From NCBI GenBank assembly GCA_029953675.1, contig JAMWBK010000001.1:3720001-3784000 (forward strand): a stretch of DNA of 64,000 nt, written 5' to 3'. Made by a program: the position numbers and the translations under genes. The notes below the pieces were generated by a model, which saw only the letters and a program-made list of their open reading frames with translations, was not told the DNA's origin and searched no databases. This DNA comes from Rhodosorus marinus CCMP1338 (lineage: Eukaryota; Plantae; Rhodophyta). Shown one piece after another: positions 4,796 to 46,126 of this stretch (its first letter is position 1; every line of letters starts with the position of its first letter).

Positions 4796-4968
4796 TTTGT
4801 CTTAGATTGGGACGACCGTGTTCAAAGGCGCTCTTTCAGCTACTCGGAGACCGACCGAAAACAGGCAACCAAAAGCCTTAATCAGGCCGCATCCAAAGGC
4901 GGGAGTCAACTCAAACCCAAGGACTTCATTGCGATTTCGTGATCAGCTGCTCATACTTTCTTATACTT

Positions 4969-21989: not shown

Positions 21990-22795
21990 GCGAATGAAAT
22001 TATTTAATCGGAGACGGAAAGAGAAAAGCCCGAGGGGAAAAACAAGACTAAGCGTGGCGAATATTCGCGCGCCTCCAACATCAAAGCAGCGTTCATAACC
22101 GACAGCAATAAACTTAAACATGTAAACTACGAGGACAGACGGTCAGGGCGTTCGCGGAACACTTCCCGAAGCTGACGAGAGCCAACGGAATCCAGAAACC
22201 CAAAGCAGCGCAATGACTAGAGGTACCAGGAGATGATCTAGAGCCAAAGCACGAATGCATGCGGGAGATAAAACCCCCGCATATTTCAACTCTTTGCGAC
22301 GTCTCATACTGGCAGCGGCAAATTCACGGGGCCTCCCACAGCCGGCAAGTAAGGGCTAACCTGGGACTAGGAACAGCAAGATCACCGTACGTCGTGACGG
22401 CGGCTATCGTCACAGTGACCCACGAGGTCCAGCCACGCGGAGTTCATCATTCTGGTACGTGTGCCACAGGCAGGGGCTTCTCACGTTCAATTTCAAGACC
22501 GGCTTGCCGCACGATAGGTCAAAGTTCGCGGTATAACGGGTTCAAGATCCGAGCATGTCGTCGGGTTCGGGCGCCTTTCAGAGCGAGGCAGCTGGGGAGC
22601 AGGTGGGCGCCAAAATCCGCGGTAGCTTCGTTTTGAGAGCAAAGTGGGCACGGCGAACCCAGCTCGGAAGGCCAGGGCGGCTCATGCAAACCGAGGTATA
22701 AACGTAGAGAAGTGCGCACTTCGAAATCTGTCAGTGTGAGTGGCGGAAAAGCGGGGACGCTCATGAGCCACTGTGAGCTGATACACCCTGCCATT
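21990..22795 (-). mobile_element. Older family B subfamily, 5'-truncated (CCHC + RLE + tail)
   Basis: ISSQWLMSVPAFPPLTLTDFEVRTSLRLYLGL..CPLC..H..C..RRH; tail with cccgagggg flanked by A runs on the plus strand. Confidence 0.85.
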
Positions 22796-22933
22796 TGTTG
22801 CATTTGATAGAACCGATACTACCCTTGATCTTAGCCAAAAGGCCGAGAAGATAGTCCTTCCACTATGATCCATGCAGCAGCCGGGGTACAACAGCCCCAT
22901 GGACTCGTCACCTCCATCTTAACCCTCTTTACT

Positions 22934-25120
22934 GGACTTTACTAGCATAGCCTGAAGCGCTACGCAAGGCGTGAAGATGAACTAATAACTAGGGAGGGAA
23001 GCATGCAACCCCAGGCGCCGATGGCGCGCCTCGGAAAGCATGTCGCTGGAATATCGCCAAAGGGAGACACTTAAACGCCTCAAGAGCGCCAAATATTCAG
23101 TAGGATGCTCAGCAAAACATTTCCGCAACCACTCTAAACCCGACTTATCCACGTGACCAAAGCTTTCCACAATGAATGGCTGGAACCGGTGAGAGCGACC
23201 CTCAGCGCAAGGCAGACTGGCCATGCTCTCAGCATACCGTCGTTCCTTAACTCTTCGAAGGGCTGAAGCCGCGGCCCCCCGGCGGCGGGCGGCTGCGGTG
23301 AGGTGGGCGCTGGCCACGGGGCAGGTAATCGCAAGGTCCACATATGTTGAGCGTCTGGCAGCAGCGTCGGAGACGAGGAGATCGGCTATACAACGGGGCG
23401 GTGCAGAGTCCGAGATGGATCTGGGCAGTTCCGACTCAACCTCAACCGTATGCCCTATCCGAGTCAAAAATTCGCTGAGGATGTACTTGAGGCGAGTGTG
23501 ACGCCTCGTACGGAGACCTCGCAACAGTCCGCAGGAACCCAGGAAGTGGTAGCCACAAGCGTCAATCCGGCTCTCACATCCCTGACAGAAAGACGGCCGA
23601 TTAGAGTGCCACGGAGCCTGTGGCAAACCGAGATAGATCCGTGCGGCAGAACGGAACTGGAAAGCATCGAGACGATGACTCAATGACGACGGTAGAGTGG
23701 TTAACCACAAGTGCGAGAGGTGGCCTCCCATGCCGCGGAGACGAGCGGCAGTGGTAGGCGGCGTGAGAGGAGAATTGAGCATGACTGTGTGAGCGGCACT
23801 GTGTTGGCCCCAGGTGAGGCTATGTTGAATTACATCAGCGCGGGAGCTCCACAATCGGCTCAAACCCGGGTAGTCTGCAACAGGGGACCCGGGGCTAGCC
23901 TCTCCGTCATCGGCAAGAACTCGGTCGAGGGGACAATCCTCAATCGCTTCAGCTCGTCCCCATATCAGCTCCCTCCAGGAATGAAAGCGGGACCGATTTG
24001 CGTCCGGCACGGCGTTGCACCTCCTGAACGCGTGTTGAAGACCATCATAAATTGTCAAAAGCGGGGGCGGCAGGGTCACTGGATCCTCGTTGGTCAAAGC
24101 TCGAGCCAAGAGGCAGGCACTTCGCATCTGGAAGGTCACCAACGTTCGCAGCGCGGTAGCCCAGGAGGCAACCGCCGCTGGCGAGCATACCAGCCCACGG
24201 TCTGCGACGCCGAATCCCCCTAATCGCAACGGTAGAGCGATCTGTGCCCGAATTAAGTCCCTGTCGGGAGCAGCTTCAAGATCGAGGGGCTCATCCAAGA
24301 GCGTTCCCCAGTGTTGCAGGGTCATTTCGTCGGCTTTAGCCGCGATCCACGAGCCCCAAGCTGGAGGCAGGCTGCGCAACCAGTAGTTGAGTCTGGGACC
24401 GGCACAAAAGCGGGAAAGCAAGCAGGCCGATTGCAGCATGCTGTCGGGTAGGTGCTCAATGGCGTCGGTGAGTTGCTTGTGCCGTGCCAAAACTCGCTCG
24501 CAGGATGCTTGGACAAAGTTGTCAGTCCCCAATCCGACGCCGTGGTGTTCGAACCCTTCACGTTCACTGATTAGTCGCAGCGTGGGTGGCAGAGAGTTCA
24601 GCGACACGTCCCTCGCGGGGAGAAAGCGACATTTTTCTGTTTCCACAGTCAAACCGACGCGACGTGCAATCGCTTCGATCGCGGTCAGTCCCCTAGCCAG
24701 GGTGTCAGGGGTGCCCAGCAATGTTACGTCATCGTGGTACGCGCAGATTCGAAGATCCGAGACCTCAGTCGAAAGACGTAAAAGTACGAGCTGTAGGGCA
24801 CAGGCATGAAGAAGAGGTCCGCAAGGGTCGCCTTGTTGGACGCCAGTATGTGCTTGAAAAACAGTGCCCTCCGTTGTCAAGTAGGGGAGGCTCTCCCCTC
24901 CGTAAATACCCGATAGAAACGGCCACGCCTCCGGAAACACACGTCGGAGCACCTCTAGCGCATGCGTCCGCGACACGCTGTTGAATGCGTTCCGGAAATC
25001 AACCACCAAGACTCCCCACTCCGGCCTACTGGCGCGTTCTAGCTCGATCCCATGGGTGATCAGTTCGCAACCCCCAGAAAATCCCACCCCTACTTGCAAG
25101 GGCGCCATAAAAGCTAAGGA
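22934..25120 (-). mobile_element. Family A CRE-like element, 3' part (RT core, CCHC, RLE, tail)
   Basis: Open 708-aa ORF 22982-25108: VDFRNAFN, GVQQGDP, AYHDD, CQGC..H..C, RH, IADLLVSD..YVDL..KERRY; tail ends AGTAAAGTCC|AGTAAAG. Confidence 0.95.
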
Positions 25121-25372
25121 AAAACAGTTTTTGGTTTCGTGAGGGTGTATGGTGCTGGCTTTTGGTGGTTTTGAGTCGCAATTGTGTTCTTCGGTGGGAG
25201 GCGCTTCTTTCTGCAGCCTTTCCCCCGCATCTTCTAGTGGTGTGGTGCGTGCTGGGGGTTGCTAGCGCCCCTTGGAGGTCATGGTGGTTTTTCTTTGGTT
25301 GCAAACGTTGGGAACAAGTTCTCTTTTTGGGGGTTTCGTGGAGGAATCGGTTTTTCACACCTTCCAATCGTT

Positions 25373-26670
25373 ATGGTTGGGGTTTCCCCACCCATTCCGG
25401 CGGACGGAGCCGTTCTCTCAGCGCGCGTGGAGCTCTGCGTGGGCGGGTTTAGTACCGCGGCCACCCTCACGGACTGCGCTGACGAGTTAGCCCATGGGAT
25501 CTGCTCGAAACTGACGAGTCTTCTTGTGACTGCTTCCCAGGAACACCGCCTGCCCCTGCTGATCGCCTATTTGGAGCGCTTCTCCGCCTCCGCGCCTGCC
25601 CCATACCCCCGGTGCCCGTCCCCGCGGATCCGCACGGTACAGCGGGGCCTGCCTCCACCCGACCCGAGCGCTCCGCTCCGGTCATTCCTGATTCCGACTG
25701 GCCTACCCCTATTCAAGGACAGACGCCTCCTGGGCCCGCGTCGGGCCCGAATCCTGCTCCCTCCAGTGCCCCACGTGCGACCTATTCGCAGGTCCTACGC
25801 AGGGGCTCTTCTGAACAACGCACGACGGCAATGGTGCGTATGATGCCACAACACATCCCTATTGACTCTTCTCGCCAACTATCTCCGTTCCACTTTGTTT
25901 GGATGACGAACGTGCGTCCCCAGACCCCCTCTCGTGGTCGGGGCCGCGCGCCCGTCCACTACCGCGATTTTCGCGACACCATGGCTTCCTCCCTTGGGGT
26001 CGCCCCGTGTGAATTCCTATATGTGGACTTCACGGGCCCTCATGCCTGTTTTCTTGTTACTGACTCGGCTTACCAGTTCCTTCAATCGCTTGTAACCACC
26101 CCCGCGCCCCAGCGCTCTGCTCTGGCCAACATGATACTGACTCGTCCTCATGTCTCTTTGCTTGTTGAGTTCGATCGTTTTGACGCCGGCTGGGTTCCTC
26201 CGTCGGCCTTGCAAAACCTGGATGCCTCGCAGGCTTCGGTTGTCGCGCTACACACTCATGCGGCGCGGCTCTCGCGCATACAGGCGAGCCTCTTCGCGCG
26301 TTTTCCTCCTCGCGGGGTCCTCCGCACCACGCTAGAGGCCTTCCTCTCCACTGAGGCCACCCTGCTGGAAGCTCACCCTGCGTTTGACCTTCTGCCGCCG
26401 ACTCTTGAGCACCCTTCCTCCCCTCGCCTTGTCTCCGAGGCTCGTGACACCGACATGGCAGAAGCACCATCGGCCTCTCCGAATCCGCTGGCTCTGGACA
26501 CCCTCAGTCAAGACTCCGCTGCTGAAAACCCTGTGTCTACTTTCTTCAGGTCTTTTAGTTCCTTCGTGCGCCCTCCACGTAAGCGTCGTGCGGCTCCTGA
26601 GCCTCCCTCCGAGGCACCTCCTCCGGATATTCGATCTGCCTTCCCGACTGAGGGGAGGCCCGATGTCTGA
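25373..26670 (+). CDS. Family B ORF1 (one frameshift in a C-run near 25606-25610)
   Basis: Pieces 25259-25843 and 25612-26670 join into the open ORF seen at 41884-43296. The likely start MVGVSPP matches subfamily B' MAGVSPP. Confidence 0.8.
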
Positions 26671-26716
26671 GTCTTCCTCCTCCGCGTGCGTGTCGTCCCG
26701 GTTACCCCTGTTTACC

Positions 26717-26839
26717 GAACGAACGAATGGTTTAATCGGAGGCTGAAAAAAAAAACCCCGAGGGGAAAAAAAGACTAAGCGCGGCGAAGTACTCGCGCCT
26801 CCAACATCAAAGCGGCATTCATGCGCCACAGCAGGAAAC
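26717..26839 (-). repeat. Inverted copy of the element's own 3' terminal about 123 nt
   Basis: Reverse complement of 29869-29992 with one mismatch seen; the same insert is at 41715-41838. Confidence 0.95.
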
Positions 26840-29800
26840 ACCCCAGTGACCGCTCAGCCTGGCATGAGCGTGTTCTCTCGTGGTTTTCGCACCTTGTCGC
26901 CTCCTACCCGGACGGTTCCCTTCCCCTTTGTCGTCAGAGCACGGCCGTACGGCTCCCTCGTCGACTTCATAAGCCCCTAGGATTGGTGTTGGATTTTCTC
27001 TGGCAGCAGGTCGCCGCGAACCCTCACTGCTCTCTTCGCTGGGAACTCTTGTTCTTTTTTCCCCGCCTCGTGCTCACCTCCTCTACCGTCCCCCTCAACC
27101 CACATCCTCGCCGGGTCCACCCTCGCCGAAAACTGCAAATGTTCCTCTCCGGCGACTTTGAGGACCTCGAACGTCTTTATTTCGCTTCTCTCTCTTCCTT
27201 TTCTCCTAGTGATCCCTCAGCTTTTAGGTCTTCTCGACAGAATCGGGCGCGTCACGCGGTGGCAGGCGGTGATCTGCGGCGGGCAGCCGGGATCCTCCAG
27301 CAGCGGCAACCTGTGGTTCCATACTCCGATGATCTTTCTTCACCGCTCCGTTTGCTCTTTCCCTCGGAAGGCTTCCCTTGGGACTCCTCGTTTGAATCAG
27401 TGTTGGAAGAGTACCGCGCCGCGCCACATCCCAGTGCGCGGTTAGTGGTCAATCTGGAGGCGGTGCGTGAGTTGGTTCATGATGCTCCGAAGGGCCGTTC
27501 CCCAGGGCCCTCGGGGCTGCGGGTGGAATATCTCCGTTTCTTAAGTGATGAAGGTTTGAAGGCGTTGGCGTGGGTGGTCGAAGCGCTTGTGAATGGTGAT
27601 CCCCTGTGTGAGTGTGCGTGGTTCTTGGTCGGGCGTTCTCAGTTGTGTCTGCTTTCGAAGCCCGGCCACACGGCCTCGAGCCCTGCTATTCGCCCTATTG
27701 GCCTGGTTGAGGTGGTCCGCAAATTGGCGGCGCGATGGTTAGTGAAAATCCTGGTTCCCGAATCCCGTCGTTTCTTTGGGCACGTGCAGTTAGGCGTGGG
27801 CTATCGTGGTGGCTGTGAGTTGTTGTCTGTTTTACTCCGTTCGGAAATGGCGTACTCCCCAGATTCTGGGCTCCTCTCTGTAGATTTTACCAATGCGTTC
27901 AACCGCGTCTATAGTCCGGCTCTCATGCACGTGGTGCGCGAAGTCTTCCCTGTAGGCTTTCCCTTTGTTAGTAGACTTTATTCTCCGCTTGGTCGTGGGG
28001 CTACCTATGACACCCTTGGCGCTTCCTCTCACACGTTTGCGGCGCGCACAGGGGTACAACAGGGTGATCCCTTGTCCCCTTTCCTACATGCCTGTGGACT
28101 ACAACTCGTCTTGCTTTGTCTTCGCTCCGAATTCCCGCAGGTTCGTACGGTTGCATACCACGACGACGTGTGCCTCCTGGGGCCCCCTGATACTCTAGCA
28201 CTCGCTTATGATCGTCTCCGCTCCTTGGCTTCGCGGGTTGACCTGGAGGTTAATCATCACAAATCGTTCTACTGGGGAGGTGTAGCTGCACAAGAGCAGC
28301 AGGTACCTGCGTCGTTCCAGGATATTTGGAGACCGGATGGTTTTGTCCACTTAGGCATCCCCTACGGGTCGCCGTCCTTCGTTGAAGGCGAGTTGCTGCA
28401 GCTCCTCGGTAAGCACAGACAGCTGGTTGCAGAGCTTCGACGGCTACCTCCGGGCTTTCTCCAGTGCTCGTTGTTGCTGTTTCGGTATTGTTGCAGTCAG
28501 CGGTTAACCTATTGGCTTCGCTCACTTCCAACTCATTGGGGCCGGTGGTTGGCCACTCGTGCGGATGCTGAAAGTTTCCGTGACCTGGGGTATTTTCTCG
28601 ATGAAGAGCTGAGCGCTCTGCCGCGACCCACCTGTGATGTTGTGCGCGCCCAGGTAGGCCTCCCATTGCGATTGGGGGACTGGGCCTCTGCAATCGTGTT
28701 GTGGTCCAACCTGCAGCCGCAGTAGGGGCCTGGGGAACCGCACTTCCCACTTTGAGCAGCTTGGGTATCTCGAAGTTCCGCAATTTGATGGCGAGCCTCT
28801 CGCGGGGTGTCTTGCTTCCCAGCGTACCGGAAAGCGCCCAAGACTTGTTTCTGGAGCTCCAAACCGCCCTGAATTCCTGTACTAGTCTCCCCGAAACCGT
28901 TCAACCCCGTCTTCCTGACTGGCGAGCTGTATTTGACCGCTCTCGAGGCTCCGCCCCGGGGATTCGTCCTGCGCCTGAACCTGTTCTAGGGGAGATTGAC
29001 CCAGTGGTTGCCGCAGAAGAAGAAGTTCCAGTTGATCCTCCTGATGATTCCCAGCGCGCTGGGAGCCGAGCTCAAGCACGCACGGATGCGCTGCAAAATA
29101 TCCTTTCTTGGGACTTGCACCGTGCTGCATATGGCCGACTCCTCGCGCAGATGGTCTCATCTTCTCGCGCTCGCGCCCGCCTACGTAGTCTTGGAGGGGT
29201 TATTAGCTCTCAGTGGCTCATGACCGTACCAGCCTTTCCGCCACTCACACTGTCGGATTTCGAAGTGCGTACTTCACTGCGCTTATACCTCGGCTTACAT
29301 CAGCCCCCTTGGCCGTACGAGATGGGTTCGTCGTGCCCTCTCTGCTCTCAGACTGAAGACAACGCAGATTTTGGCGCCCACCTGCTCGCTAGTTGCCCGG
29401 CGGTGAAAGGTGCTCGAACCCGCCGCCACACACGGATCTTGAACCTGTTATACCGGGAACTTCGGCCTATAGTCCGGCAAGCCGGTCTGGAAATCGAACG
29501 TGAGAAACCTTTACCCGTCGCGGACTTTCAAAATGATGAACGCCGTGTAGCCGACCTGGTGATCACCTGTGACGACAGCCGCCGTACCACATACGTTGAT
29601 CTTGCTGTTCCTAACCCTCAAGCTAGTCGTTATCTCCCGGCTGCGGGGGAGCGCCGTGGATCTGCCGCCGCCAGCATGAGACGCCGCAAAGAGATCAAAT
29701 ACGCGGGGGCTTTGTCTTCCCCTGGTGTTCGTGCTTCGGCACTAGCACATCGCTTGGTACCCCTGATCATTGAGTGCTTTGGGTTCATGGACTCTGTTGG

Positions 29801-29933
29801 TTCTCGCTGGCTTCGGGAGTTGTTCCGCGAACGCCCTGACCGTCTTCAATCGTTGTTTACCCGTTTAAGTTTCCTGCTGTGGCGCATGAATGCCGCTTTG
29901 ATGTTGGAGGCGCGAGTACTTCGCCGCGCTTAG
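26821..29933 (+). CDS. Family B ORF2: RT-CCHC-RLE (one frameshift in a G-run near 28674-28678)
   Basis: SPGPSG, IRPIGL, VDFTNAFN, GVQQGDP, AYHDD, CPLC..H..C, VADLVIT..YVDL..KEIKY. Native ATG at 26665 overlaps the ORF1 end (gATGtcTGA). Confidence 0.9.
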
Positions 29934-29992
29934 TCTTTTGTTCCCCTCGGGGTTTTTTTTTTCAGCCTCCGATTAAACCATTCGTTCGTTCG

Positions 29993-30490
29993 GTGAAGGC
30001 GCTGGCATAGCCACCTCCCGGCTAACTTCCGTAGGCTCTCCACCATCTCGATCGGCCGGAGACGCGGGTGGGCCGGCTGGTGGTCAGGTTTCGTGAGCAA
30101 GCAAAGCTGTGCCTGCCGGAGATGTTCCCATGGCGCAGACGCACCCGATACGCCCTGGAACAACTTGTTAAGGATCCTCAGAAGCGCGCTCTGGCCAGGC
30201 TGGCTCAGGGCCTGCAATAGCTCTGTTCTTAGTCCGGAGGGTCCGGGACAGCGTCCCCGACGCGAGGTACGAAGCAAATCCTCCAGGTCAGACTCACTGA
30301 GCGTCAGATCGATGCGAAACCTGGCCAACTCCGGACGGTCCAAGAATACCTCGAATTCAGGGGACAAATCCACGTCGGACTCAGGGAACAAAGACGACAC
30401 CGTCTGGGCGAGACTATCATCGTAGGGGAGGACTGGCGCCTGGCCCTCCAAAACCCGCGCCGCTCGACTTAAATCGCCCACTGCTACCAA
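29993..30490 (-). mobile_element. Family A CRE-like element, 5' part of RT (continues at 25120)
   Basis: VAVGDLSRAARVL..CPGPSGLRTE..LRPIEMVESLRKLAGRWL, collinear with family B ORF2. Confidence 0.9.
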
Positions 30491-30556
30491 TGGACGTGTC
30501 GAAGAAAACCCTTCCAGGCTCTTCGACTCTTTTTGTGAATGATCCTTCCGCAGGTT
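30491..30556 (-). rRNA. Fragment: 18S rRNA 3' terminus (30538-30556) plus candidate ITS1 start; not a functional rRNA gene
   Basis: Minus strand AACCTGCGGAAGGATCATT is the conserved eukaryotic SSU rRNA 3' end. It is followed by CACAAAAAGA and a GTCGAAGA..TCTTCGAC hairpin. Confidence 0.7.
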
Positions 30557-31356
30557 AGCGGCTATACTAACATATCCTGATGCGCTACAAAAGATGTAAA
30601 GGGAAACTAGGGACTAGGCAGAAGAGCATGCAAGGGCAGGCGGCGGTGGCGCGCCTCGGCGAGCATGTTGCTAGAATACCGCAGAGGGCGACACCAAAAC
30701 GGCGGAGGAGCACCAGATGTTCTTCTGGATGTTCGGTGAAGTATTTGCGCAGCCACTCCAAGCTTAACTTTTTCAGATGCCCAAAGCTTTCCACCATGAA
30801 AGGTTGGAACCTGTGAGACCGGTCCTCTTCCACGGGAATACTGGCCATGCTCTCAGCGTACCCTCGTTCCTTCACCCGGCGAAGTCCGCTGCGTCCGATA
30901 CCAGGAAATCTGCTTTCCAAGGGGGAGGAGTGGTTGCGGAGGGTATTCGAGGCAGTGCCGATTCCACCTCGACCGTGTAGCCAAATCTTGTCAAGTGCCC
31001 GCTCACGATGTATTGCAGACGCGTGTATCTCTTCGTGCGATGACCTAACAGCAGTCCACACGAGCCCAGGAAGTGGTACCCACATCCATCTATGCGGGTC
31101 GCAAAACCTTGGCAGAAGCAAAGGCGGTGGGAATGCCAAGGGGCCTGTGGCAAACGGAGGTAGATGAGTGCCGCGGTCCGGAACTGGAAGGCGTTCGATC
31201 GTTGGCCCTGTGATGAGAGCAAAGTGGTAAGTACTACTTCGATCTCGCTTCGTGCTCGTGTCCTGGTTCCCCGGGACAGCCTCGCATGGACCCGGGTCTT
31301 GAGTTCCCGGGCGCTGAGAGGCTCCGCGTACGGCCTGCACGCCTCCGTCAATACCG
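30557..31356 (-). mobile_element. Diverged family A' 3' fragment, frameshifted, with tail
   Basis: AFQFRTAALIYL.LPQAPWHS, KADFLVSD, RRVKERGY, FQPFMVESFG; tail gtagcgcatcaggatatgttagtatagcc. Confidence 0.85.
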
Positions 31357-31432
31357 TTAACCCCTTTATATCCAATTTGTAATTCTACTCCGAAATTCCA
31401 CCCCTTGACTACCGCAACCGTAACCTTTTACT

Positions 31433-31590
31433 GGGTAGCTGCCTTATGCTGCGCACACTAATTCGAGTACTATCTAGGGTGAGACGGGCCTAACCCCACA
31501 CGCTGGGTGCTCTAGCTACGATAAAAAGAAAAATAAGGAATCACTGGTTGGTCCGACTGATTCACACGAAGAGCTGCTAACGCAAACTTT
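31433..31590 (-). mobile_element. Family C' 3' tail fragment
   Basis: Encodes ALAALRVNQSDQPVIPYFSF, similar to ALGALRVDQLENPLVPVFSF; ends gcagctaccc|AGTAAAAGG. Confidence 0.75.
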
Positions 31591-31634: not shown

Positions 31635-34600
31635 CCCTAGCAATCGTGGCCACTCCTGCATTCTCTCGCCAGCGCTCTCCGTTTCATCTCGTCTGGATGA
31701 CGAACGTGCGCCCCCAGACCCCTTCTCGTGGTCGGGGTCGCGAGCCCGTTCACTACCGTGATTTCCGCGATACGATGGCCTCGTCACTTGGAGTCGCTCC
31801 ATCTGAGTTCATCTATATGGATTTCAATGGACCTCATGCCTGTTTCCTCGTCACAGAGTTTGCTTATGAATGCCTTACCTCGCTTGTCGCCATCCCTGAG
31901 CCCCAGCGCTCTGCCTTGCAAACACGACACTGACTCGTGCCCACGTCTAATTGTTTGTTGAGTTTGACCGCTTCGACGCAGGATGGGTTCCCACGTCGGC
32001 GCTGTAGAGCCACCCTTCCACGCAAGCTCCTGTTATCGCACTGGAAACTCATGGTGCGCGACTTTTACGCATCCAGTCGAGCCTCCTTGAACGCTTCCTG
32101 CCCCCCGTGGAGTCCTCCGCTCGGCGTTAAGAGGACTTCCTCGCCGCTGAGGCCGCTCTGATGGAAGCTCATCCGGCCTTTTACCTCTACCGAGCGACTC
32201 CTGCCCGCCCTCCTCCCCTCGACATGTGGGCGGCCCCATCGTGCTCCTCGAATCCGCTGGCTTTGGACACCCTCAGCGAAGACTCCGTTCCTGACAATCC
32301 TGCATCTGCCTTCTTTAGGTCTTCTAGTTCCTTCGCCCGTACACCACGTAAGCCCCGTGCCGCCCTGAGTCACCCTCAGAGGGCCCCCCACCGGATACCC
32401 GCAACGCCTCCGCCGCTGAGAGGACGCCTGATGTCTGGGTCCTCTTACCCCGCCCGGGTGTCACCCGTGTCCGTCCTGTTCGCCGATGCCCCCTCCACCT
32501 GGCGCGAGCGCGTTTTCTCGTGGTTCTCTGACCTTATCGCCTCATTACCGGGTGGTGCCATTCCCTTGTGCCGTCAGAGCCCAACTGTACGGCTCCCTCG
32601 TTGTCTGTACTAACCTTTTGCGTTGATCTTGGACCTCTTATGGCAGGAAGTTTCCGATCACCCTCAATGCTCTCTTCGCTGGGATCTCCTTTCCTTTTTC
32701 CTCGCCTCGTGCTCACTTCCTCTACTGTCTCGAGCACTTCGTCTTCCCGCCGTATCCACCCTCAGCGCAAGATGCATTTGTTCCTATCCGGTGACTTTGA
32801 AGAGCTCGAGCGCCTCTACTATGTTTTCCTCTCTTCCATCTCTACCTGTCCCCTGTCAGACCTCAAGTCTAGCCAACAACGGGCACGTCACGCTGGGCAG
32901 GCGGTGATCTCTTGAGGGCTGGGAGTATCCTCCAGCAACGGCAACCTGTGGTCGAGTATTCAGACGATCTTGCTTCTTCGCTACACTCGCTTTTTCCCGC
33001 AGCAGGCTCTGGGTGGGACCCGTCTTCTGACGCGGAGGTGGAAGCGGTCCAAGTAGCGTCCAATGAAGGCGAGCGGCTGGTGGTCACCTCTGAGGCTGTG
33101 CGTGGGCTGATCCAGCCTGCTCAAAGGGTCGTTCTCCTGGGCCCTCGGGTTCGCGGGTGGAATACCTCCGTTTTTTGGGTGATGAGGGTATGAAAGCGTG
33201 CGCGTCCATGTTGAAGGGAGTCGTCAATGGCGATCCTTTTTGTGATCGTGCATGGTTTTTACTGGACGCAGCTATCTTTGCTCTCCAAGTCGGGTCGCAC
33301 TACTTCGACTCCAGCCCTTCGCCCTATTTTCATGGCGGAAGCGGTCCGTAAACTGGCAGCTCCTTGTTAGGTCCAGATTTTGGTCCCCGAATCCCTTTGC
33401 TTTTTTGGGCACGCGCAGTTGGGCGTGGGCTATCGCGGCGGCTGTGAATTGCTATCAGCACTCCTTCGCTCGGATCTGGCCTACTCACCGGACTACGGGT
33501 TATTATCTGTAGACTTTAGCAATGCTTTTAATCGTGTCTCTCGATCAGCCATTATGCATGTGGCGTGCCAGGTCTTCCCGGTAGCTCTTCCCTTAGCTAG
33601 TACTCTTCACCCTTTGACGGGCCAAGGGCCAACTTATGAAACCCTCGGCCATTCCTCATACTCCTTTGAGGCGCGGACCGGGTTCAACAGGGTGACCCGT
33701 TGGCGCCGTTTTTGCACGCCCGTGGGCTTCAGGTCTTTCTGCTTAGCCTGCGTTCAGAGTTCCCGGAGGTCCGCACAGTGGGTTAAAAGGATGATTTCTG
33801 AATCATTGGGCCTCCAGATACCGTCGCGGCGGCGTACGATCGTGTCCGTACACTGGCATCCCTCGTCGATCTCGAAGTCATCATGCGAAGTCGTTCTACT
33901 GGGGAGGAGCGGATATTCAAGAGCAGCAGGCCCCCGCGCGTTTCCGAGATAGTTGGCGTCGGGCAGGGTTTGTCCACCTAGGCATCCCCCATGGGTCCGC
34001 GTCGTTCGTGGAGGGTAAGTTGTCGCAGATTCTGAGCAAGTACCTGTAGCTGGCCTCGGAGCCCAGTCTGCTGCCTCGCGGATTCTTGCAATGCTCGTTG
34101 TTGCTTTATCGATATTGTTGCAGTCAGCGGCTCACCTATTGGTTCCGCTCGCCCCCGAATCGCTGGGGCCGGTGGCTGGCAAGCCGTGCGGACGACGGGA
34201 GCTTTGACTAGCTGGGATATTTCTTAGATGTCGAGTTGGGCATCTTCCGCGCCCCAACCGTTATATCGTTGGCGCCGAAGGGGGCCTACCCGTACGCCTG
34301 GGCGGTCTAGGCCTTTGTAACCGAGCACATCGCTTGGTACCCCTGATCATTGAGTGCTTTGGGTTCATGGACTCTGTTGGTTCTCGCTGGCTTCGGGAGT
34401 TGTTCCGCGAACGCCCTGACCGTCTTCAATCGTTGTTTACCCGCTTAAGTTTCCTGCTGTGGCGCATGAATGCCGCTTTGATGTTGGAGGCGCGAGTTCT
34501 TCGCCGCACTTAGTCTTCTTTTCCCCTCGGGGTTTTTTTTTTTCAGCCTCCGATTAAACCATTCGTTTCGTGTAACCGAGCTAGGCCTCTGTAACCGAGC

Positions 34601-35385
34601 TGTTATCCAACCAGCGGCCGTGGTTGGGTCTTGGGACACCGCCCTCCCGACGTTGAGCGCGTTGGGTGTGTCTAGTTTCCGAAATTTGGAGTTCAGTCTT
34701 TCCAGTGATGATAGAATCTAGTGTCCCTGAAAGTGCCCGTGGTTTGTTTCTCGAGCTCCAATCGGCGATGTACCAGACTCCCTGCCGGCCTGCACCCACG
34801 TCTGACTGGCTGGCGAGCCGTTTTTCACGGGCTCGCGGCCCCGCGGCCCGACCAGCTGCCGGTGATGATCCGTTTATTCAGAGGCTAACTACCCTGAGAA
34901 GCGAGAGACAAGACGCTGATTACGCGCGTCCACAAACAAAGCAGAATTGGAGTGCCACAGGGTCAAAGAAAGCTCCGTGAGCAGACTATCTAAACGCCCT
35001 AGGTCGTTGACTGGGGTTGTACCTCCCGCAAAAAATCCTCTGGTTGCTGAGGAAACAGAGGTCCCTCGTGATCCTCTTGATGATGGAACGGGCTCTGGGA
35101 GTCTCGTCTTCGCGCGTACCGATCAGATGCAAAACACCCTTTCTTCGGACTTGCACCGTGCTCCCTCGGCAGACTTCTCGCGCAGATGGTCTCGTCTTCC
35201 CGAGACCGCGCCCGCCTGCGTAGTCTTGGAGGGTGTATCAGCTCGCAGTGGCTCATGAGCGTCCACGCTTTTCCGGCACTCACACTCACGGATTTCGAAG
35301 TGCACACTTCTCTACGTTTATACCTCGGCTTGCATCAGCCGCCCTGGCCTTCCGAGAATAGTGACGATATTGAACGGTAGGTATA
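31635..35385 (+). mobile_element. Subfamily B' element, decayed, truncated at both ends
   Basis: Frameshifted homologs of B ORF1 (WMTNVRPQTPSRGRG) and ORF2 (LGVGYRGG, VDFSNAFN, ISSQWLM). Confidence 0.9.
34327..34571 (+). mobile_element. Young family B 3' fragment inserted into B'
   Basis: Near-identical to about 29746-29990; TSD GTAACCGAGC at 34317-34326 and 34572-34581, with a third copy at 34591-34600. Confidence 0.9.
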
Positions 35386-36648: not shown

Positions 36649-37032
36649 GTATATGCATATAGATATTATATATATTACATAGATACATACTCACAACCGT
36701 CCATATGTGTTGTTTGTTTCCCCAAAAGTAGCTTAAGGCCGCACTTAGAGCGGCCTCTTTGCTTTCCAGTCATCTGTGCTCCGGACGCTCGCTCTGTCCT
36801 TTTCTGTCCCTGCACGTCACTTGCTGTATAAAGTACCTGTGTGTATATGCATATAGATATTATATATATTACATAGATACATACTCACAACCGTCCATAT
36901 GTGTTGTTTGTTTCCCCAAAAGTAGCTTAAGGCCGCACTTAGAGCGGCCTCTTTGCTTTCCAGTCATCTGTGCTCCGGACGCTCGCTCTGTCCTTTTCTG
37001 TCCCTGCACGTCACTTGCTGTATAAAGTACCT
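36649..37032. repeat. Tandem direct duplication, 194-bp period
   Basis: The unit starting gtatatgcatatagat occurs at 36649 and 36843; each holds the hairpin AGGCCGC-ACTTAGA-GCGGCCT. Confidence 0.95.
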
Positions 37033-37400
37033 ATCTCCCCTCTGCCGCTCTCCGCCGGGACACAGCAGCGTCTGTACGTCGCCGACTAAAGGAACGGCGG
37101 TATACGGCGAGCATGGCCAGTCTCCCCTGGGCGGAGGGCCGCTCTCACAGGTTCCAGCCTTTCGTTGTGGAAAGCCCTGGGAATCTGGGCAAGTCAAGCT
37201 TGGAGTGGCCGCGGAAATCTTCTAATGACCATCCTGCTGAAAATCTGATACTCCTACGCCGTTTAAGTGTCGCTCTCTGGCAGTGTTCATATTCGAACAG
37301 CATGCTCGCGGAGGCGCACCACCGCAGTCTGGGCATGTAGTTTTTTTCCTAGTTCCTAGTTCATTTTTTACGACCTGCGTGGCGCTAGGCTACTAAAACC
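37033..37400 (+). mobile_element. Decayed family A-like RLE/3' fragment
   Basis: MASLPWAEGRSHRFQPFVVES..LLRRLSVALW. A further short piece lies at about 37690-37770 and a decayed B tail on the minus strand at about 37860-37990. Confidence 0.8.
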
Positions 37401-38488: not shown

Positions 38489-38641
38489 AGTAACCCCCTG
38501 TGGCGCATGAATGCCGCTTTGATGTTGGAGGCGCGAGTACTTCGCCGCGCTTAGTCTTTTTTTCCCCTCGGGGTTTTTTTTTCAGCCTCCGATTAAACCA
38601 TTCATTCAGTAACCCTGTGCTAATAAAGCCAGTAACCCTGT
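38489..38641 (+). mobile_element. B tail plus 12-nt A-type tail at one site, with a triplicated target
   Basis: AGTAACCC(CC)TGT at 38489; B tail; AGTAACCCTGT at 38608; GCTAATAAAGCC; AGTAACCCTGT at 38631. Confidence 0.8.
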
Positions 38642-38804
38642 TCGTCACCAGAACCAGCTCTCACAGAACAGGTTCAGTCAATATAAGGGTCCTGATTGGT
38701 TACCAGTCTTTTCGATTGACCTATGGTAAGGTGGCAATAGGGCCGGCTCTATCTGCCCTATCATATTACGATACTAATTTCAACGGTTTGGCCTTAAAAA
38801 AAAC

Positions 38805-39232
38805 GTGATCACCGGTGACGACAGCCGCCGTACCACATACGTTGATCTTGCTGTTCCTAACCCTCAAGCTAGTCGTTATCTCCCGGCTGCGGGGGAGCGC
38901 CGTGGATCAGCCGCCGCCAGCATGAGACGCCGCAAAGAGATTAAATACGCGGGGGCTTTGTCTTCCCCTGGTGTTCGTGCTTCGGCACTAGCACATCGCT
39001 TGGTACCCCTGATCATTGAGTGCTTTGGGTTCATGGACTCTGTTGTTCTCGCTGGCTTCGGGAGTTGTTCCGCGAACGCCCTGACCGTCTTCAATCGTTG
39101 TTTACCCGCTTAAGTTTCCTGCTGTGGCGCATGAATGCCGCTTTGATGTTGGAGGCGCGAGTACTTCGCCGCGCTTAGTCTTTTTTTCCCCTCGGGGTTT
39201 TTTTTTTCAGCCTCCGATTAAACCATTCGTTC
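38805..39232 (+). mobile_element. Young family B 3' fragment (RLE C-terminus + tail)
   Basis: Near-identical to about 29559-29990; imperfect TSD TAAAAAA(AAC)GTG. Confidence 0.9.
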
Positions 39233-39234
39233 GT

Positions 39235-40680: not shown

Positions 40681-41030
40681 CGCAGGTTGGCTTTTGATAG
40701 CGTTGTTGATCGTGTTGCCGTTGTGCGAAGACGGTTGCAGCTTCCGGTAGGGTCGTCATAGTTCGAGTTTCGTCCGGTGTAATAAGGTCGGCTGGCAGGG
40801 GTGGATTCTTTCCGTATACTAGCTCGAATGGAGAAATTCGGTTGCTCCTGAGATTTGGCGATTCCACGTAAGTCCTGCCATCGGTAGAAAATCTGCCCAG
40901 TTCGACGTTGTTGCATTATATCGTAGGTACGTCTCCAAAATTTGATTTATCCGCTCCGTTTGTCCATCCGTCGGCGGATGATACGCGGTATAACTTTTCT
41001 GCTTCACCTTCAAAGAACAGAGATATTCCA
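40681..41030 (-). mobile_element. Displaced integrase-core fragment of gypsy element 1
   Basis: SYTAYHPPTDGQTERINQILETYLR and SPFELVYG. Confidence 0.85.
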
Positions 41031-43430
41031 CCCGCAGCCCCGAGGGCCCTGGGGAACGGCCCTTCGGAGCATCATGAACCAACTCACGCACCGCCTCCAG
41101 ATTGACCACTAACCGCGCACTGGGATGTGGCGCGGCGCGGTACTCTTCCAACACTGATTCAAACGAGGAGTCCCAAGGGAAGCCTTCCGAGGGAAAGAGC
41201 AAACGGAGCGGTGAAGAAAGATCATCGGAGTATGGAACCACAGGTTGCCGCTGCTGGAGGATCCCGGCTGCCCGCCGCAGATCACCGCCTGCCACCGCGT
41301 GACGCGCCCGATTCTGTCGAGAAGACCTAAAAGCTGAGGGATCACTAGGAGAAAAGGAAGAGAGAGAAGCGAAATAAAGACGTTCGAGGTCCTCAAAGTC
41401 GCCGGAGAGGAACATTTGCAGTTTTCGGCGAGGGTGGACCCGGCGAGGATGTGGGTTGAGGGGGACGGTAGAGGAGGTGAGCACGAGGCGGGGAAAAAAG
41501 AACAAGAGTTCCCAGCGAAGAGAGCAGTGAGGGTTCGCGGCGACCTGCTGCCAGAGAAAATCCAACACCAATCCTAGGGGCTTATGAAGTCGACGAGGGA
41601 GCCGTACGGCCGTGCTCTGACGACAAAGGGGAAGGGAACCGTCCGGGTAGGAGGCGACAAGGTGCGAAAACCACGAGAGAACACGCTCATGCCAGGCTGA
41701 GCGGTCACTGGGGTGTTTCCTGCTGTGGCGCATGAATGCCGCTTTGATGTTGGAGGCGCGAGTACTTCGCCGCGCTTAGTCTTTTTTTCCCCTCGGGGTT
41801 TTTTTTTTCAGCCTCCGATTAAACCATTCGTTCGTTCGGTAAACAGGGGTAACCGGGACGACACGCACGCGGAGGAGGAAGACTCAGACATCGGGCCTCC
41901 CCTCAGTCGGGAAGGCAGATCGAATATCCGGAGGAGGTGCCTCGGAGGGAGGCTCAGGAGCCGCACGACGCTTACGTGGAGGGCGCACGAAGGAACTAAA
42001 AGACCTGAAGAAAGTAGACACAGGGTTTTCAGCAGCGGAGTCTTGACTGAGGGTGTCCAGAGCCAGCGGATTCGGAGAGGCCGATGGTGCTTCTGCCATG
42101 TCGGTGTCACGAGCCTCGGAGACAGGGCGAGGGGAGGAAGGGTGCTCAAGAGTCGGCGGCAGAAGGTCAAACGCAGGGTGAGCTTCCAGCAGGGTGGCCT
42201 CAGTGGAGAGGAAGGCCTCTAGCGCGGTGCGGAGGACCCCGCGAGGAGGAAAACGCGCGAAGAGGCTCGCCTGTATGCGCGAGAGCCGCGCCGCATGAGT
42301 GTGTAGCGCGACAACCGAAGCCTGCGAGGCATCCAGGTTTTGCAAGGCCGACGGAGGAACCCAGCCGGCGTCAAAACGATCGAACTCGACAAACAAAGAG
42401 ACATGAGGACGAGTCAGTATCATGTTGGCCAGAGCAGAGCGCTGGGGCGCGGGGGTGGTTACAAGCGATTGAAGGAACTGGTAAGCCGAGTCAGTAACAA
42501 GAAAACAGGCATGAGGGCCCGTGAAGTCCACATATAGGAATTCAAACGGGGCGACCCCAAGGGAGGAAGCCATGGTGTCGCGAAAATCGCGGTAGTGGAC
42601 GGGCGCGCGGCCCCGACCACGAGAGGGGGTCTGGGGACGCACGTTCGTCATCCAAACAAAGTGGAACGGAGATAGTTGGCGAGAAGAGTCAATAGGGATG
42701 TGTTGTGGCATCATACGCACCATTGCCGTCGTGCGTTGTTCAGAAGAGCCCCTGCGTAGGACCTGCGAATAGGTCGCACGTGGGGCACTGGAGGGAGCAG
42801 GATTCGGGCCCGACGCGGGCCCAGGAGGCGTCTGTCCTTGAATAGGGGTAGGCCAGTCGGAATCAGGAATGACCGGAGCGGAGCGCTCGGGTCGGGTGGA
42901 GGCAGGCCCCGCTGTACCGTGCGGATCCGCGGGGACGGGCACCGGGGGGTATGGGGCAGGCGCGGAGGCGGAGAAGCGCTCCAAATAGGCGATCAGCAGG
43001 GGCAGGCGGTGTTCCTGGGAAGCAGTCACAAGAAGACTCGTCAGTTTCGAGCAGATCCCATGGGCTAACTCGTCAGCGCAGTCCGTGAGGGTGGCCGCGG
43101 TACTAAACCCGCCCACGCAGAGCTCCACGCGCGCTGAGAGAACGGCTCCGTCCGCCGGAATGGGTGGGGAAACCCCAACCATAACGATTGGAAGGTGTGA
43201 AAAACCGATTCCTCCACGAAACCCCCAAAAAGAGAACTTGTTCCCAACGTTTGCAACCAAAGAAAAACCACCACGACCCCCAAGGGGCGCTAGCAACCCC
43301 CAGCACGCACCACACCACTAGAAGATGCGGGGGAAAGGCTGCAGAAAGAAGCGCCTCCCACCGAAGAACACAATTGCGACTCAAAACCACCAAAAGCCAG
43401 CACCATACACCCTCACGAAACCAAAAACTG
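41031..43430 (-). mobile_element. Second family B copy, 5' half only, including the inverted self-tail
   Basis: Near-identical inverted match to 25125 to about 27535; ends at PSGLRVEYL; 5' flank AGTAAAACGAAT. Confidence 0.95.
41884..43296 (-). CDS. Family B ORF1, uninterrupted
   Basis: Open 470-aa ORF (likely about 430 aa from MVGVSPP). Confidence 0.85.
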   Translation of the reverse strand: MLAPLGGRGGFSLVANVGNKFSFWGFRGGIGFSHLPIVMVGVSPPIPADGAVLSARVELCVGGFSTAATLTDCADELAHGICSKLTSLLVTASQEHRLPLLIAYLERFSASAPAPYPPVPVPADPHGTAGPASTRPERSAPVIPDSDWPTPIQGQTPPGPASGPNPAPSSAPRATYSQVLRRGSSEQRTTAMVRMMPQHIPIDSSRQLSPFHFVWMTNVRPQTPSRGRGRAPVHYRDFRDTMASSLGVAPFEFLYVDFTGPHACFLVTDSAYQFLQSLVTTPAPQRSALANMILTRPHVSLFVEFDRFDAGWVPPSALQNLDASQASVVALHTHAARLSRIQASLFARFPPRGVLRTALEAFLSTEATLLEAHPAFDLLPPTLEHPSSPRPVSEARDTDMAEAPSASPNPLALDTLSQDSAAENPVSTFFRSFSSFVRPPRKRRAAPEPPSEAPPPDIRSAFPTEGRPDV

Positions 43431-43439
43431 ATTCGTTTT

Positions 43440-43680
43440 ACTGAGTATCCTGTTATTATCAACGCAAAATCTCCAACTCCCGGATTCAAAAGTTTTTCCG
43501 CCCAGATATGTTGGGCCTTTCAAAATTCCACGCAAAGTTGGCGAAGTTGCGTATCAACTGGAGCTCGGAGGGAATCATCAAATCCATGACGTTTTTCACG
43601 TATCGCTTCTACGTAAGTTTAACGGAGCCGAACCAGAAATGACCGAAGTGACAAGGGCACTCTTACCAGACACCCAACAA
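43440..43680 (+). mobile_element. Inverted integrase C-terminal (GPY/F) fragment of gypsy element 1
   Basis: Plus strand encodes LLSTQNL..PRYVGPFKIPRKVGEVAYQLELG..IHDVFHVSLLRKF. Confidence 0.85.
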
Positions 43681-46070
43681 CGCGAAGTGTAGTCAGTATC
43701 TCGGTCGGAAACAATTTCTCTGGGTAACCCCGCAAACCTAACCCAATGGCGTAGGAATAGCTCTGCAACCTTCTGCGCAGAAACGTCAGTGGTTGTCAGA
43801 ATAAAACGAGAATACTTGGTGAAGCGATCCACGATGACAAAGATGGAGTCGAACCCTTCCGCAGTCATAGGTAGGCGAATGATAAAGTCCATAGAAATTG
43901 ACTGGAACTTCCCATCTGGAATGGGTAGAGGTTGGAGTGTGCCCGCTGTCGATCGTAGAGGTTTTTGTCGTTGACAGACATCACAGTGTCTTAGCATTTG
44001 TTGGATGTCGTGTTTCATCGTTGACCAAAAATACTTCCTCTTAATCAGGTTCCGGGTTTTCGTTACCCCAAAGTGTCCTCCGGTTGGCTCTTCGTGATAG
44101 GTTCTGAGCAATCTATCGACCATTGATTCAGGTACACAAATACGATGATGTCGATAGAGGACGTTATTCCTCTTGAGAAAACCCTGCTCCGCATATTCTG
44201 CAGGTCGCTGATAGATCGCCGCAAACTCTGGATCGCGTAGGTACGTCTGCGGCCAATCCACATCGGTCGTAATCGACGATACAGCCAGTTGCTGGATGGC
44301 ATGTCTGCTTAGCGCATCCGCAATGTTGTCACTGCCTTTTCTGTATTCGATCGAAAACTGGAAGGGCATCAGTCTATTGATATATCGTGCCTGCCTCTTC
44401 GTGAGCTCCTTCTGCGAGTGTAAGAATCTCAACGGGTTGTGATCGGTTCTCACTAAAAATCGGTTTCCCTCCAAGTAAGTTCGCCAGTGTAAGATCGCGG
44501 TTGTCAATGCGAAAAGCTCCTGCTCATACGTTGAGTATCTGGCTTCCGCATTCGTAAATTTTTTTGAGTAATAGGCTACAGGATGTTCGCCTGTGTCGAA
44601 TGTTTGTAACAGCACACCGCCCACTCCGATGTTGCTGGCGTCGGTGTGGACAATGAACTCCCGGGTAAAGTCAGGGCTACGCAGCACTGGGTGTTGAGTG
44701 ATTCGCGTTCGTAAATTGTTAAACGCTGCCGCTTCTCTGGTTCCCCAATTAAAACTCGACCCTTTCTTCGTTAATGCGGTTAACGGGGCCGCAAGTGGGC
44801 TGAACTCTGAAATGTAGCTCCGTAAATAATTAGCAAAACCCAAGAAGGATCTTACATCCGTAACATTGGAAGGTGTCCGCCAATTCCGGATCGCCGTAAT
44901 TTTGGTAGGATCTGGCTTCCTGGTTCCACTGCCAACGAGATGCCCGAGATATTGGGTCTCAGGTACCCCGAACGTACATTTCCCCTTTTTCGCGTATAAT
45001 TTGTGTTCGTGGAGTTTCGCGAACACGATATCCAAATGCTTCCGATGTGCATCCAGGTCCGAAGAGTAAACGATGATATCGTCAAAAAAAATCTTGACGA
45101 AATGACCTAACTCTTTGAAGAATATGTGTGTCAGAAGTCGAGTAAACACGGCCGGTGCGTTCGTCAAACCAAAAGGCATGACTAGCCATTCATACAACCC
45201 AAACGGCGTTGTGAATGCTGTCTTAGGGATGTCTTCTTCTCGCACCCGTAACTGCCAGTAGCCACTGCGCAGATCGATGACGCTTAAGTATGTGGCGGAG
45301 TCTAGGGCATCGAGGCAGTCGTCAATGCGCGGCGGGCTCGTCCGGTTTGGTATTGTAGATTGGTTGAGCTTTCGATAGTCAATGCACAAACGCTTTCCTC
45401 CATCTTTCTTGTCTACAAACAGACATGGCGACGCGAATGGGGAGGAACTCGGTCGAATCAGCTTCCTCTGTAACAAGTTCTGTAGCTGCTTCTTTAGTTC
45501 GTGTTGGTCTGGGAGACTCATGCGGTATGGTCGTTGGGCCTTTGGTTCTGCTCCCGGTCGTAGCTCGATATCAAAGTTAACTTTGCGCCATGGAGGTAGC
45601 TCAGGAACATCGTCGGGAAAAACTCCGTCATATTTTGCGGTTATCCGGGTCTCGAACTCTTTCGCCTCTTTCTGGCGTCTGGATCTTTCAGGGTCTTCAG
45701 GTTCTTCAGGTTCTTCAGGTTTTTCAGGTTTTTCAGGTTCTTCAGGGTCTTTAGGTTTTAGTGTCAGGGTCTGGTTTTGTAGATTCAGCTGCGCGTTGTA
45801 TTTTTGCAGGAAATCTCTTCCTAAGTACCCCGGGCTAGTGGCTTCTTCCACAATATAGGGTTGCCAGTTGAAGTTGTGATCACCTAGCTGTAAGATTACG
45901 TTCTCTTCCCCCAGAATCTCTATTGATGCGCCTGGGGAAGCGGTGTCCAAACTCCCGTGTTGAGTTGGGATTATTGGAGTGGCGTCTGGTATGCCTCGCA
46001 GAACGGAATGGCTACTTCCGGTATCGATCAGGAGGGCTTGCTTCTTCCCATTCAAGAATCCCGTAACCAT
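43680..46070 (-). CDS. Ty3/gypsy pol (PR-RT-RNase H-IN), gypsy element 1
   Basis: LIDTGS, LCIDYRKLN, MPFGL, FFDD, TDAS..DH..DALSR, H..H..C..C, SMDF, IVSDRD; open until the break near 43680. Confidence 0.95.
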
Positions 46071-46126
46071 AAGGTTTCCACTGAAGGGAATCCGAACGCC
46101 TTTATCAGCAACAGTGTTGGCGTCTC

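Follow-up and report, generated by a model that had tools for sequence, protein, structure and literature searches.

How could the 3′ end of an 18S rRNA come to lie between two pieces of non-LTR retrotransposons? This question is raised by 66 nucleotides of the genome of the red alga Rhodosorus marinus. They are located within a stretch of 64,000 nucleotides, called the window hereafter (positions 3,720,001-3,784,000 of contig JAMWBK010000001.1, assembly GCA_029953675.1), to which all coordinates below refer. The central 40 kb of the window are a nest of non-LTR retrotransposon pieces. A Ty3/gypsy-type LTR retrotransposon is also found (43596-46903, minus strand), with gag (capsid, zinc knuckle) and pol (protease, reverse transcriptase, RNase H, integrase), and a perfect 190-bp tandem duplication (36649-37032, plus strand, 100% identity) stands beside an A′-like tail (36942-37392). 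Host genes occupy the left edge (163-13334), with PPR-like, sulfotransferase and ankyrin-repeat ORFs, the ankyrin-repeat ORF being grouped with R. marinus transcripts in a cluster at 90% identity.

The insert and the elements around it

On the minus strand, the order at the locus is ...GTTAGTATAGCC GCT AACCTGCGGAAGGATCATT CACAAAAAGAGTCGAAGAGCCTGGAAGGGTTTTCTTCGACACGTCC ATTGGTAGCAGTGGG... The 66 nt thus stand between an element of type A′ and an element of family A, the latter being itself interrupted by an element of family B:

30560-31245, minus strand: A′-type non-LTR element, 5′-truncated, with the C-terminal endonuclease region, stop codon and 3′ UTR (tblastn/blastn)
30557-30559, minus strand: GCT, part of neither the aligned A′ tail nor 18S (tail alignment)
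30538-30556, minus strand: 19 nt of the 18S 3′ end, AACCTGCGGAAGGATCATT (exact unique match)
30491-30537, minus strand: 47 nt, candidate ITS1 start with an 8+4 bp hairpin, contiguous with the 18S end
29998-30490, minus strand: family A, part 1, 5′-truncated inside the region upstream of the reverse transcriptase (tblastn; equivalent to residues 143-311 of B ORF2)
25125-29997, plus strand: full-length B element, with 5′ UTR, ORF1, and ORF2 with reverse transcriptase and endonuclease (Pfam RVT_1; second copy)
22934-25124, minus strand: family A, part 2, from reverse transcriptase motif 3 to the 3′ end ...GCTAGTAAAGTCC (collinear with B ORF2 from residue 318)
22924-22933, minus strand: AGTAAAGAGG, target-type motif at the A 3′ junction, where target-primed reverse transcription of A would have started

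The reverse transcriptase (RT) domain RVT_1 of Pfam is found in the A ORF (5e-13) and in B ORF2 (1.4e-10), and the nearest solved relatives of this RT are those of R2 and of LINE-1 ORF2p. In the three families, the C-terminal domain has invariant C..C..C, RRH, E.E, D and D columns. The fold modelled for this domain with moderate confidence (pLDDT 68.6) has R2 proteins as all of its top seven PDB matches (E 4.5e-7 to 1.3e-3), the next ones being PD-(D/E)xK nucleases. In the one full-length element, the N-terminal part of B ORF2 gave no match to the endonuclease/exonuclease/phosphatase family of Pfam. Taken together, the RT matches, the conserved columns and the predicted fold show A, A′ and B as non-LTR elements equipped with an RT and an R2-like restriction-type endonuclease. 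At this level of architecture, judged from the RT matches and the C-terminal fold, the R2-superfamily assignment made in a first-pass annotation of the window was sound. Furthermore, the pieces display the hallmarks of target-primed reverse transcription, namely 5′ truncations, a defined and shared 3′ end, and target duplications.

The family A piece that begins at 30490 and the 708-aa ORF at 25108-22982 of the minus strand, which carries RVT_1, are collinear across the B element. They therefore belong to one 2.7-kb, 5′-truncated copy that was split later: B inserted afterwards, antisense, into the RT gene of this copy, and its 5′ end is the same as in a second, 99.6% identical copy. With 99.3% identity to another copy (59499-60395), the A copy is accordingly young, which agrees with the 19 out of 19 match of the 18S piece. 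Three further observations concern these elements. The B element carries a 129-bp inverted B tail (26711-26839, minus strand) between ORF1 and ORF2. The 5′ 2.4 kb of B, including the inverted tail, recur at 41016-43433 (minus strand) with 99.6% identity. Finally, an independent A copy (L001:811-830, SRR32518361) breaks after ...CTATGCCAGCGC, at most one base away from the B interruption (window 29998-30010), and the RT gene of A may hold a hot spot or a preferred site at that break point.

By its letters, the 19-mer AACCTGCGGAAGGATCATT is the conserved 3′-terminal sequence of eukaryotic 18S rRNA. It has a single match in the window with up to three mismatches (chance expectation 0.01), and the string is present in ITS and 18S primers and sequences of 120 papers, which cover animals, fungi and plants. 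The bacterial and plastid 16S end diverges past AACCTGCGG. The first two A's of the 19-mer are presumably the helix-45 adenosines with N6,N6-dimethylation, that is, the AA of GGTGAACC. Thus, the 19-mer lies where the first-pass annotation had placed it (30556-30538, minus strand), and the published 18S and ITS strings agree with its proposed identity as the eukaryotic SSU rRNA 3′ terminus. With Rfam, no rRNA was detected in the whole window at E<=5, nor in the 10 kb beyond it; the 19-mer receives no score because 19 nt are too few.

The 18S part ends with ...GGATCATT, directly followed by the start of the 47 nt (CACAAAAAGAGTCGAAGAGCC.../CACAAAAAGAGTCGAAGAGCCTGG...). Beginning with CACAAAAAG/CACAAAAAGAGTCGAAG, these 47 nt may be the first part of the host ITS1. 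Located at 30537-30491, they have no other copy in the window, and the A at 30491 is common to this stretch and to family A. A search of Rfam with 111 nt around the insert returned no match, hence none for the 47 nt. Exact scans of metagenome contigs with GCGGAAGGATCATTCACAAAAAGAG and GTCGAAGAGCCTGGAAGGGTTTTC gave no match, host rDNA being absent from the collections searched. A protein query built from the 18S end and the 47 nt, translated in all six frames, produced a chance match only (E 1.9), and a string search of papers for the 47-nt/rDNA sequence found nothing. The hairpin with an 8-bp stem that had been noticed in the 47 nt does exist, with a fold of -18 kcal/mol, but its z of -1.2 is not exceptional, and on this ground a functional structure was ruled out.

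It might be argued that the 66 nt are an ordinary coding sequence of family A, or that the 18S match arose by chance, since the stretch is open in the ORF2 frame. This caveat, already present in the first-pass annotation, carries no weight, as none of the three forward frames has a stop within the 66 nt. Moreover, the match would be expected 0.01 times even with three mismatches, and longer copies of family A speak directly against a coding sequence. Such copies (Logan L001 and L002, 78-87% identical) align only from ATTGGTAGC (30490) onward, so that family A homology begins at the 30491/30490 border, as had been proposed when family A was placed after the 47 nt. Upstream of ATTGGTAGC, L001 and L002 share another sequence, which, once translated, shows homology to the part of B that precedes the RT. 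Because the longer copies carry this different, B-homologous sequence, the 66 nt are foreign to family A and are not coding. The check that the first-pass annotation had set for itself, a search for A copies carrying the 66 nt as coding DNA, has thus been run on L001 and L002, which are without them, and ordinary coding DNA is refuted. The probability left to a coding or fortuitous origin is close to nil.

Integration sites and the borders of the insert

The sites used by these elements bear directly on how the insert could have been formed. After all seven of the other A-type tails in the window, AGTA or AGTG-like bases (AGTR) are found, the flanks being AGTAAAGAGG, AGTAGAACGA, AGTAAACAGT, AGTAACCCTG, AGTAGTGGTG, AGTAGAGATG and AGTAAAGCCC. 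In the case of the copy at 59499-60395, AGTAGAACG(A) is present on both sides (59489-59498 and 60396-60405, plus strand), as a duplication of 9-10 bp. Since it also precedes the 5′ end, AGTR is there the duplicated target, and the end of the A RNA deduced from this duplication is ...AAAGTCC. At 38489-38641 (plus strand), two tails, one of B with 110 nt and one of A type with 12 nt, stand between three copies of AGTAACCC(C)(C)TGT, and target copies are thus retained between re-inserted elements (38489/38608/38631). Similarly, a 250-nt B tail is enclosed by copies of GTAACCGAGC (34305-34601, plus strand). These flanking repeats show that the elements insert just 5′ of AGTR/GTAAC and re-use sites, usually with target duplications of 8-11 bp. 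The motif being duplicated as target in the flanks, the nick, at which reverse transcription starts, lies just 5′ of it. The GTRA target claimed earlier is therefore broadly right as a motif, but the target duplications place the nick 5′ of the motif and not inside it. A general enrichment in GTAACC was considered and rejected (28 sites for about 30 expected), so that the motif counts only at junctions. An array running from 15120 to 15040 on the minus strand consists of five tail pieces of 9-29 nt, each ending with AAGCC, followed by the target AGTAAACAGTG. Most plausibly, reverse transcription was aborted several times here and each time resumed at an RNA 3′ end, so that serial jumping by this family is directly visible, in favour of template switching at the insert as well.

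The A′ piece, of about 0.7 kb, matches residues 469-707 of the 708-aa A ORF (tblastn) and is 69-75% identical to A tails (blastn). For its own ORF, the protein database yielded no homologue at E<=0.001. Alignment with four other A-type tails sets the end of its tail at ...ATAGCC (30560), in ...GTTAGTATAGCC. The first-pass annotation had the 18S sequence start exactly at the end of the A′ tail. The A′ tail does precede it, but GCT lies between them. These three bases may have been added without a template, or may open another tail unit, GCTAA; at their position the universal 18S has GTG, if we rely on the ITS1 primer TCCGTAGGTGAACCTGCGG. The boundary is ambiguous by 2 nt, AA being attributable to 18S, to the A′ tail or to untemplated addition, and if AA is 18S, the enzyme read both modified bases before it stopped.

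No AGTR follows the A′ tail. GCT followed by AACC stands there instead, which is neither AGTR nor the GTG plus AACC of 18S. The border between A′ and 18S is therefore not a normal endonuclease junction, and this argues against an insertion of A′ into 18S DNA at GGTG^AACC, which had been offered as one of the explanations of the locus. In such a scheme, A′ would be specific to the 18S 3′ end, and a read-through rDNA transcript would have been copied after one jump from the A RNA. A single jump would then be sufficient, the A′ tail does adjoin the 18S piece, and GTGAACC loosely resembles the GTAACC sites found beside several B tails. However, with a nick 5′ of the motif and the motif kept in the 3′ flank, GTG should have remained where GCT is found, and the aligned A′ tail ends 3 nt before AACC. 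In addition, no 18S sequence occurs upstream of A′, elsewhere in the window or in the 10 kb beyond, and the related tails of the window have, in seven cases out of seven, AGTR flanks that are not rDNA. We know of no non-LTR element at the helix-45 loop site, at the extreme 18S 3′ end. R2 relatives do target rDNA, including 18S in the case of R8 (PMC5035012). If A′ were nevertheless 18S-specific, rDNA units would carry A′, and the window would contain a retro-copy of a Pol I read-through transcript. With neither AGTR after the tail, nor GTG in place of GCT, nor any other 18S sequence, this proposal is disfavoured and we regard it as improbable. Its loose sequence likeness retains one consequence: the coincidence with helix 45 could stem from the resemblance of GTGAACC to the GTAACC-type sites of the family.

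The same borders were considered for an origin at the DNA level, where A′ and A would have inserted independently on either side of an orphan or break-repair rDNA fragment. The setting favours it to some extent, as the dense insertion nest is 22-86 kb from the end of a 3.8-Mb contig and such regions collect fragments. On the other hand, a remnant of exactly 66 nt, with an edge that coincides with the dimethyl-adenosines, would have to result from two insertions, neither edge shows AGTR or a target duplication, and there are no other rDNA remains. The chances of this origin appear slim. An explanation in which A simply inserted later at the target of A′ is likewise disfavoured, because a target copy should then remain between the two elements.

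Where the A′ piece begins on its 5′ side is poorly defined. Upstream of it, the sequence at 31407-31479 (minus strand) shows homology to the 3′ UTR (61959-62031, plus strand) of an element from a fourth family, whose ORF at 60453-61952 likewise has an R2-like endonuclease. In view of this homology, the head-to-tail chain may extend further upstream of A′.

A U2 piece and other composites

Near the other end of the A copy, a second junction with a host RNA was observed:

22807-22854, minus strand: U2 snRNA, nt 1-46 (Rfam RF00004, 46.3 bits, E 4.6e-6, model positions 1-46)
22003-22793, minus strand: B-type 5′-truncated tail following U2 (80% identity to B 29195-29977)

The U2 match is followed by some 15 nt more, up to 22794, and B homology starts from 22793. 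The U2 piece is 7.6 kb from the 18S piece and about 76 nt downstream of the A 3′ end; in the flanks (22794-22929), Rfam finds only chance lncRNA matches for the 76 nt between the A 3′ end and U2. This piece, which runs from about nt 46-62 of U2 to its 5′ end, is a second host-RNA filler, and it ends at a natural RT stop. Among elements of the same superfamily, Utopia is specific to the U2 gene, and U2 sequence from nt 39 follows its 3′ end (PMC4640811). Here, in contrast, U2 comes before a truncated 5′ end, that of the B-type tail. This stretch of nt 1-46 is the sole U2 piece in the window, and none of the tails has U2 after its 3′ end. A Utopia-type insertion into a U2 gene was therefore rejected, both the side and the position being wrong. 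The evidence for a host-RNA filler thus comes from one locus with 18S sequence and this one parallel.

Fillers derived from tRNA were looked for in the window and none was found. At 38642-38803 (plus strand), about 160 nt ending with A8 directly precede a B tail of 431 nt with a truncated 5′ end (38804-39234), and may represent a third filler, from the 3′ end of a polyadenylated RNA. A composite of two families is also seen at 31645-34323 (plus strand), where an ORF1 and an RT about 70% identical to those of B are followed by a B tail with 97.5% identity (34324-34571, plus strand).

Template switching as the probable source of the insert

The insert is in sense, oriented like the elements on both sides, and lies at a 5′-truncation point; longer A copies lack it. 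Since fillers resulting from template switching are expected at 5′-truncation points, its position supports capture. We therefore consider it probable that the 66 nt are a cDNA of host rRNA, acquired by template switching during the integration of family A. The end of the 18S part is also informative, as it coincides with the AA of GGTGAACC, at a distance of 18-19 nt from the 3′ terminus of 18S. To our knowledge, the helix-45 adenosines, which we take to be A1781/A1782 in yeast and A1850/A1851 in human (counted from the 3′ end), are dimethylated in nearly all organisms. From this near-universal conservation, the same dimethylation is assumed by analogy for Rhodosorus. A dimethylated molecule that still bears ITS1 is a normal late 18S precursor (20S in yeast, 21S/18S-E in human). 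As dimethyl-adenosines block reverse transcriptases, a stop of the RT within a base or two of AA would be expected. The position of the m6,2A pair and its blocking effect on reverse transcriptases have been described, and helix-45 dimethylation is made on ITS1-bearing precursors, namely 20S in yeast, and nuclear 21S and its precursors in human (PMC4472018).

Considering these properties, the following course of events may be envisaged. Reverse transcription of the A RNA would start at AGTAAAGAGG (22933) and run over 2.7 kb. At the equivalent of 30490, the RT would leave the A RNA for an 18S precursor, 47 nt downstream of the 18S 3′ end, in the putative ITS1. It would then copy into 18S and halt at the two N6,N6-dimethyl-adenosines of the helix-45 loop (GGUG-AA-CCUG). 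After addition of GCT (or GCTAA), the cDNA would be continued on the 3′ end of the A′ RNA; less likely, it would be joined to an A′ copy already present in the DNA. The full-length B would have inserted into the A copy afterwards. On balance we favour this scenario, in which the RT copying A RNA switches to pre-18S RNA, stops at helix 45 and yields a cDNA joined to A′. A single reverse transcription from A RNA to rRNA to A′ RNA is the simplest reading. A second AGTAAAGAGG upstream, which would make a duplication around the whole chimera, was not found; this result bears on the choice between a single event and two, and not on the RNA origin. For the chain taken together, a degenerate target duplication at 31431 was considered and rejected, its score being within that of shuffled controls. 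The jump of the RT onto pre-rRNA put forward by the first-pass annotation is thus borne out in part: a foreign insert in sense, a 5′ truncation, an end at AA and the U2 parallel all fit it.

The capture could also have involved two RNAs instead of one. The 47 nt would then come from another RNA, from which the RT would have jumped end-to-end onto the 3′ end of mature 18S and run 17-19 nt to the dimethyl-adenosine block, so that both ends of the 19-mer would be natural ones. R2-type enzymes favour acceptor 3′ ends, which is in line with such a jump, and no RNA 3′ end in the cell is more abundant than that of 18S. CATT is followed by C, where many eukaryotes have A or G, and the 47 nt have no rDNA match anywhere searched. 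These empty searches, however, reflect the missing host data and not a real mismatch. Furthermore, one jump more is needed than with a contiguous precursor, and neither Rfam nor the rest of the window contains a match to the 47 nt. On its own, such a run-off on mature 18S seems rather unlikely, and within RNA capture the contiguous ITS1 precursor is judged likelier than mature 18S plus another RNA.

Capture from a contiguous precursor has relatives among known systems. LINE-1 chimeras (U6/L1, U3, U5, 5S, 28S rRNA/L1, tRNA halves) likewise consist of a host non-coding RNA fragment joined, in sense, to a LINE copy truncated at its 5′ end. They are attributed to RNA ligation, or to a switch of template, in the course of target-primed reverse transcription (bioRxiv 10.1101/2025.02.02.635956), and include rRNA fragments with recurrent end points (bioRxiv 10.1101/2025.02.02.635956; PMC6789731). 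LINE-1 is mammalian and has an APE-type endonuclease and a poly(A) tail, whereas the present elements have a restriction-like endonuclease and are found in a red alga; the accessible portion of that report gives no 18S/ITS1 case and no link to modified bases (bioRxiv 10.1101/2025.02.02.635956). In Magnaporthe grisea, the MGL LINE, MINE and WEIRD sequences form bipartite and tripartite chimeric retrogenes, described as head-to-tail RNA fusions formed by two template jumps in one reverse transcription (PMC2104539). There, the LINE is fungal and the partner RNAs are others, and the single event is backed by flanking duplications, which were not found here.

R2 has the same architecture as the elements described here, with an RT, a C-terminal zinc knuckle and a restriction-like endonuclease. 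Bibillo and Eickbush reportedly observed, in 2002 and 2004, end-to-end template jumping by R2 RT. R2-type RT is used as a serial template jumper, leaves a few untemplated bases at jumps, and extra sequence occurs at the 5′ junctions of truncated R2 copies. Yet R2 is strictly 28S-specific and has one ORF, while the present elements possess an ORF1, use short AGTR motifs across the transposon nest as insertion sites and give duplications of 8-11 bp. Retroviruses and LTR retrotransposons provide another likeness, as their plus-strand strong-stop DNA ends at m1A58 of the tRNA primer, after 18 nt. In both situations, a blocking modified base would set the length of the host-RNA copy, here 17-19 nt to m6,2A. 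The strong-stop DNA is nevertheless a built-in replication step, as opposed to a functionless accident here. R2, R8 and R9 are rDNA-specific elements with restriction-like endonucleases (PMC5035012). As at this locus, R2, R8, R9 and Utopia combine membership of the same superfamily with adjoining sequence from a host RNA gene. The split 18S flanks of an R8-like insertion are not seen, the 19 nt of 18S being 3′ of A′ only, with no partner half. Template-switch chimeras are therefore already known, and what is new here is the endonuclease type, the red algal host and an 18S, possibly ITS1, fragment with its end at a modified base.

The 66 nt are without function; they are a molecular fossil of an RNA that adjoined the integration complex, and, for a single functionless locus, the general interest is moderate. 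In transposon annotation, fillers of this type may pass for target sites or rDNA fragments, from which they can be discriminated by AGTR, target duplications and nick position. If the 47 nt are ITS1, the fragment would record that the 3′ end of a late, dimethylated 18S precursor was near the integration machinery. If the proposed capture is true, the point where a captured fragment ends can be determined by a modified base of the rRNA, in the way that m1A58 of the tRNA primer fixes the copy of the retroviral primer-binding site. The locus would then be an in vivo trace of serial template jumping by an R2-like RT in red algae, where such elements are hardly described.
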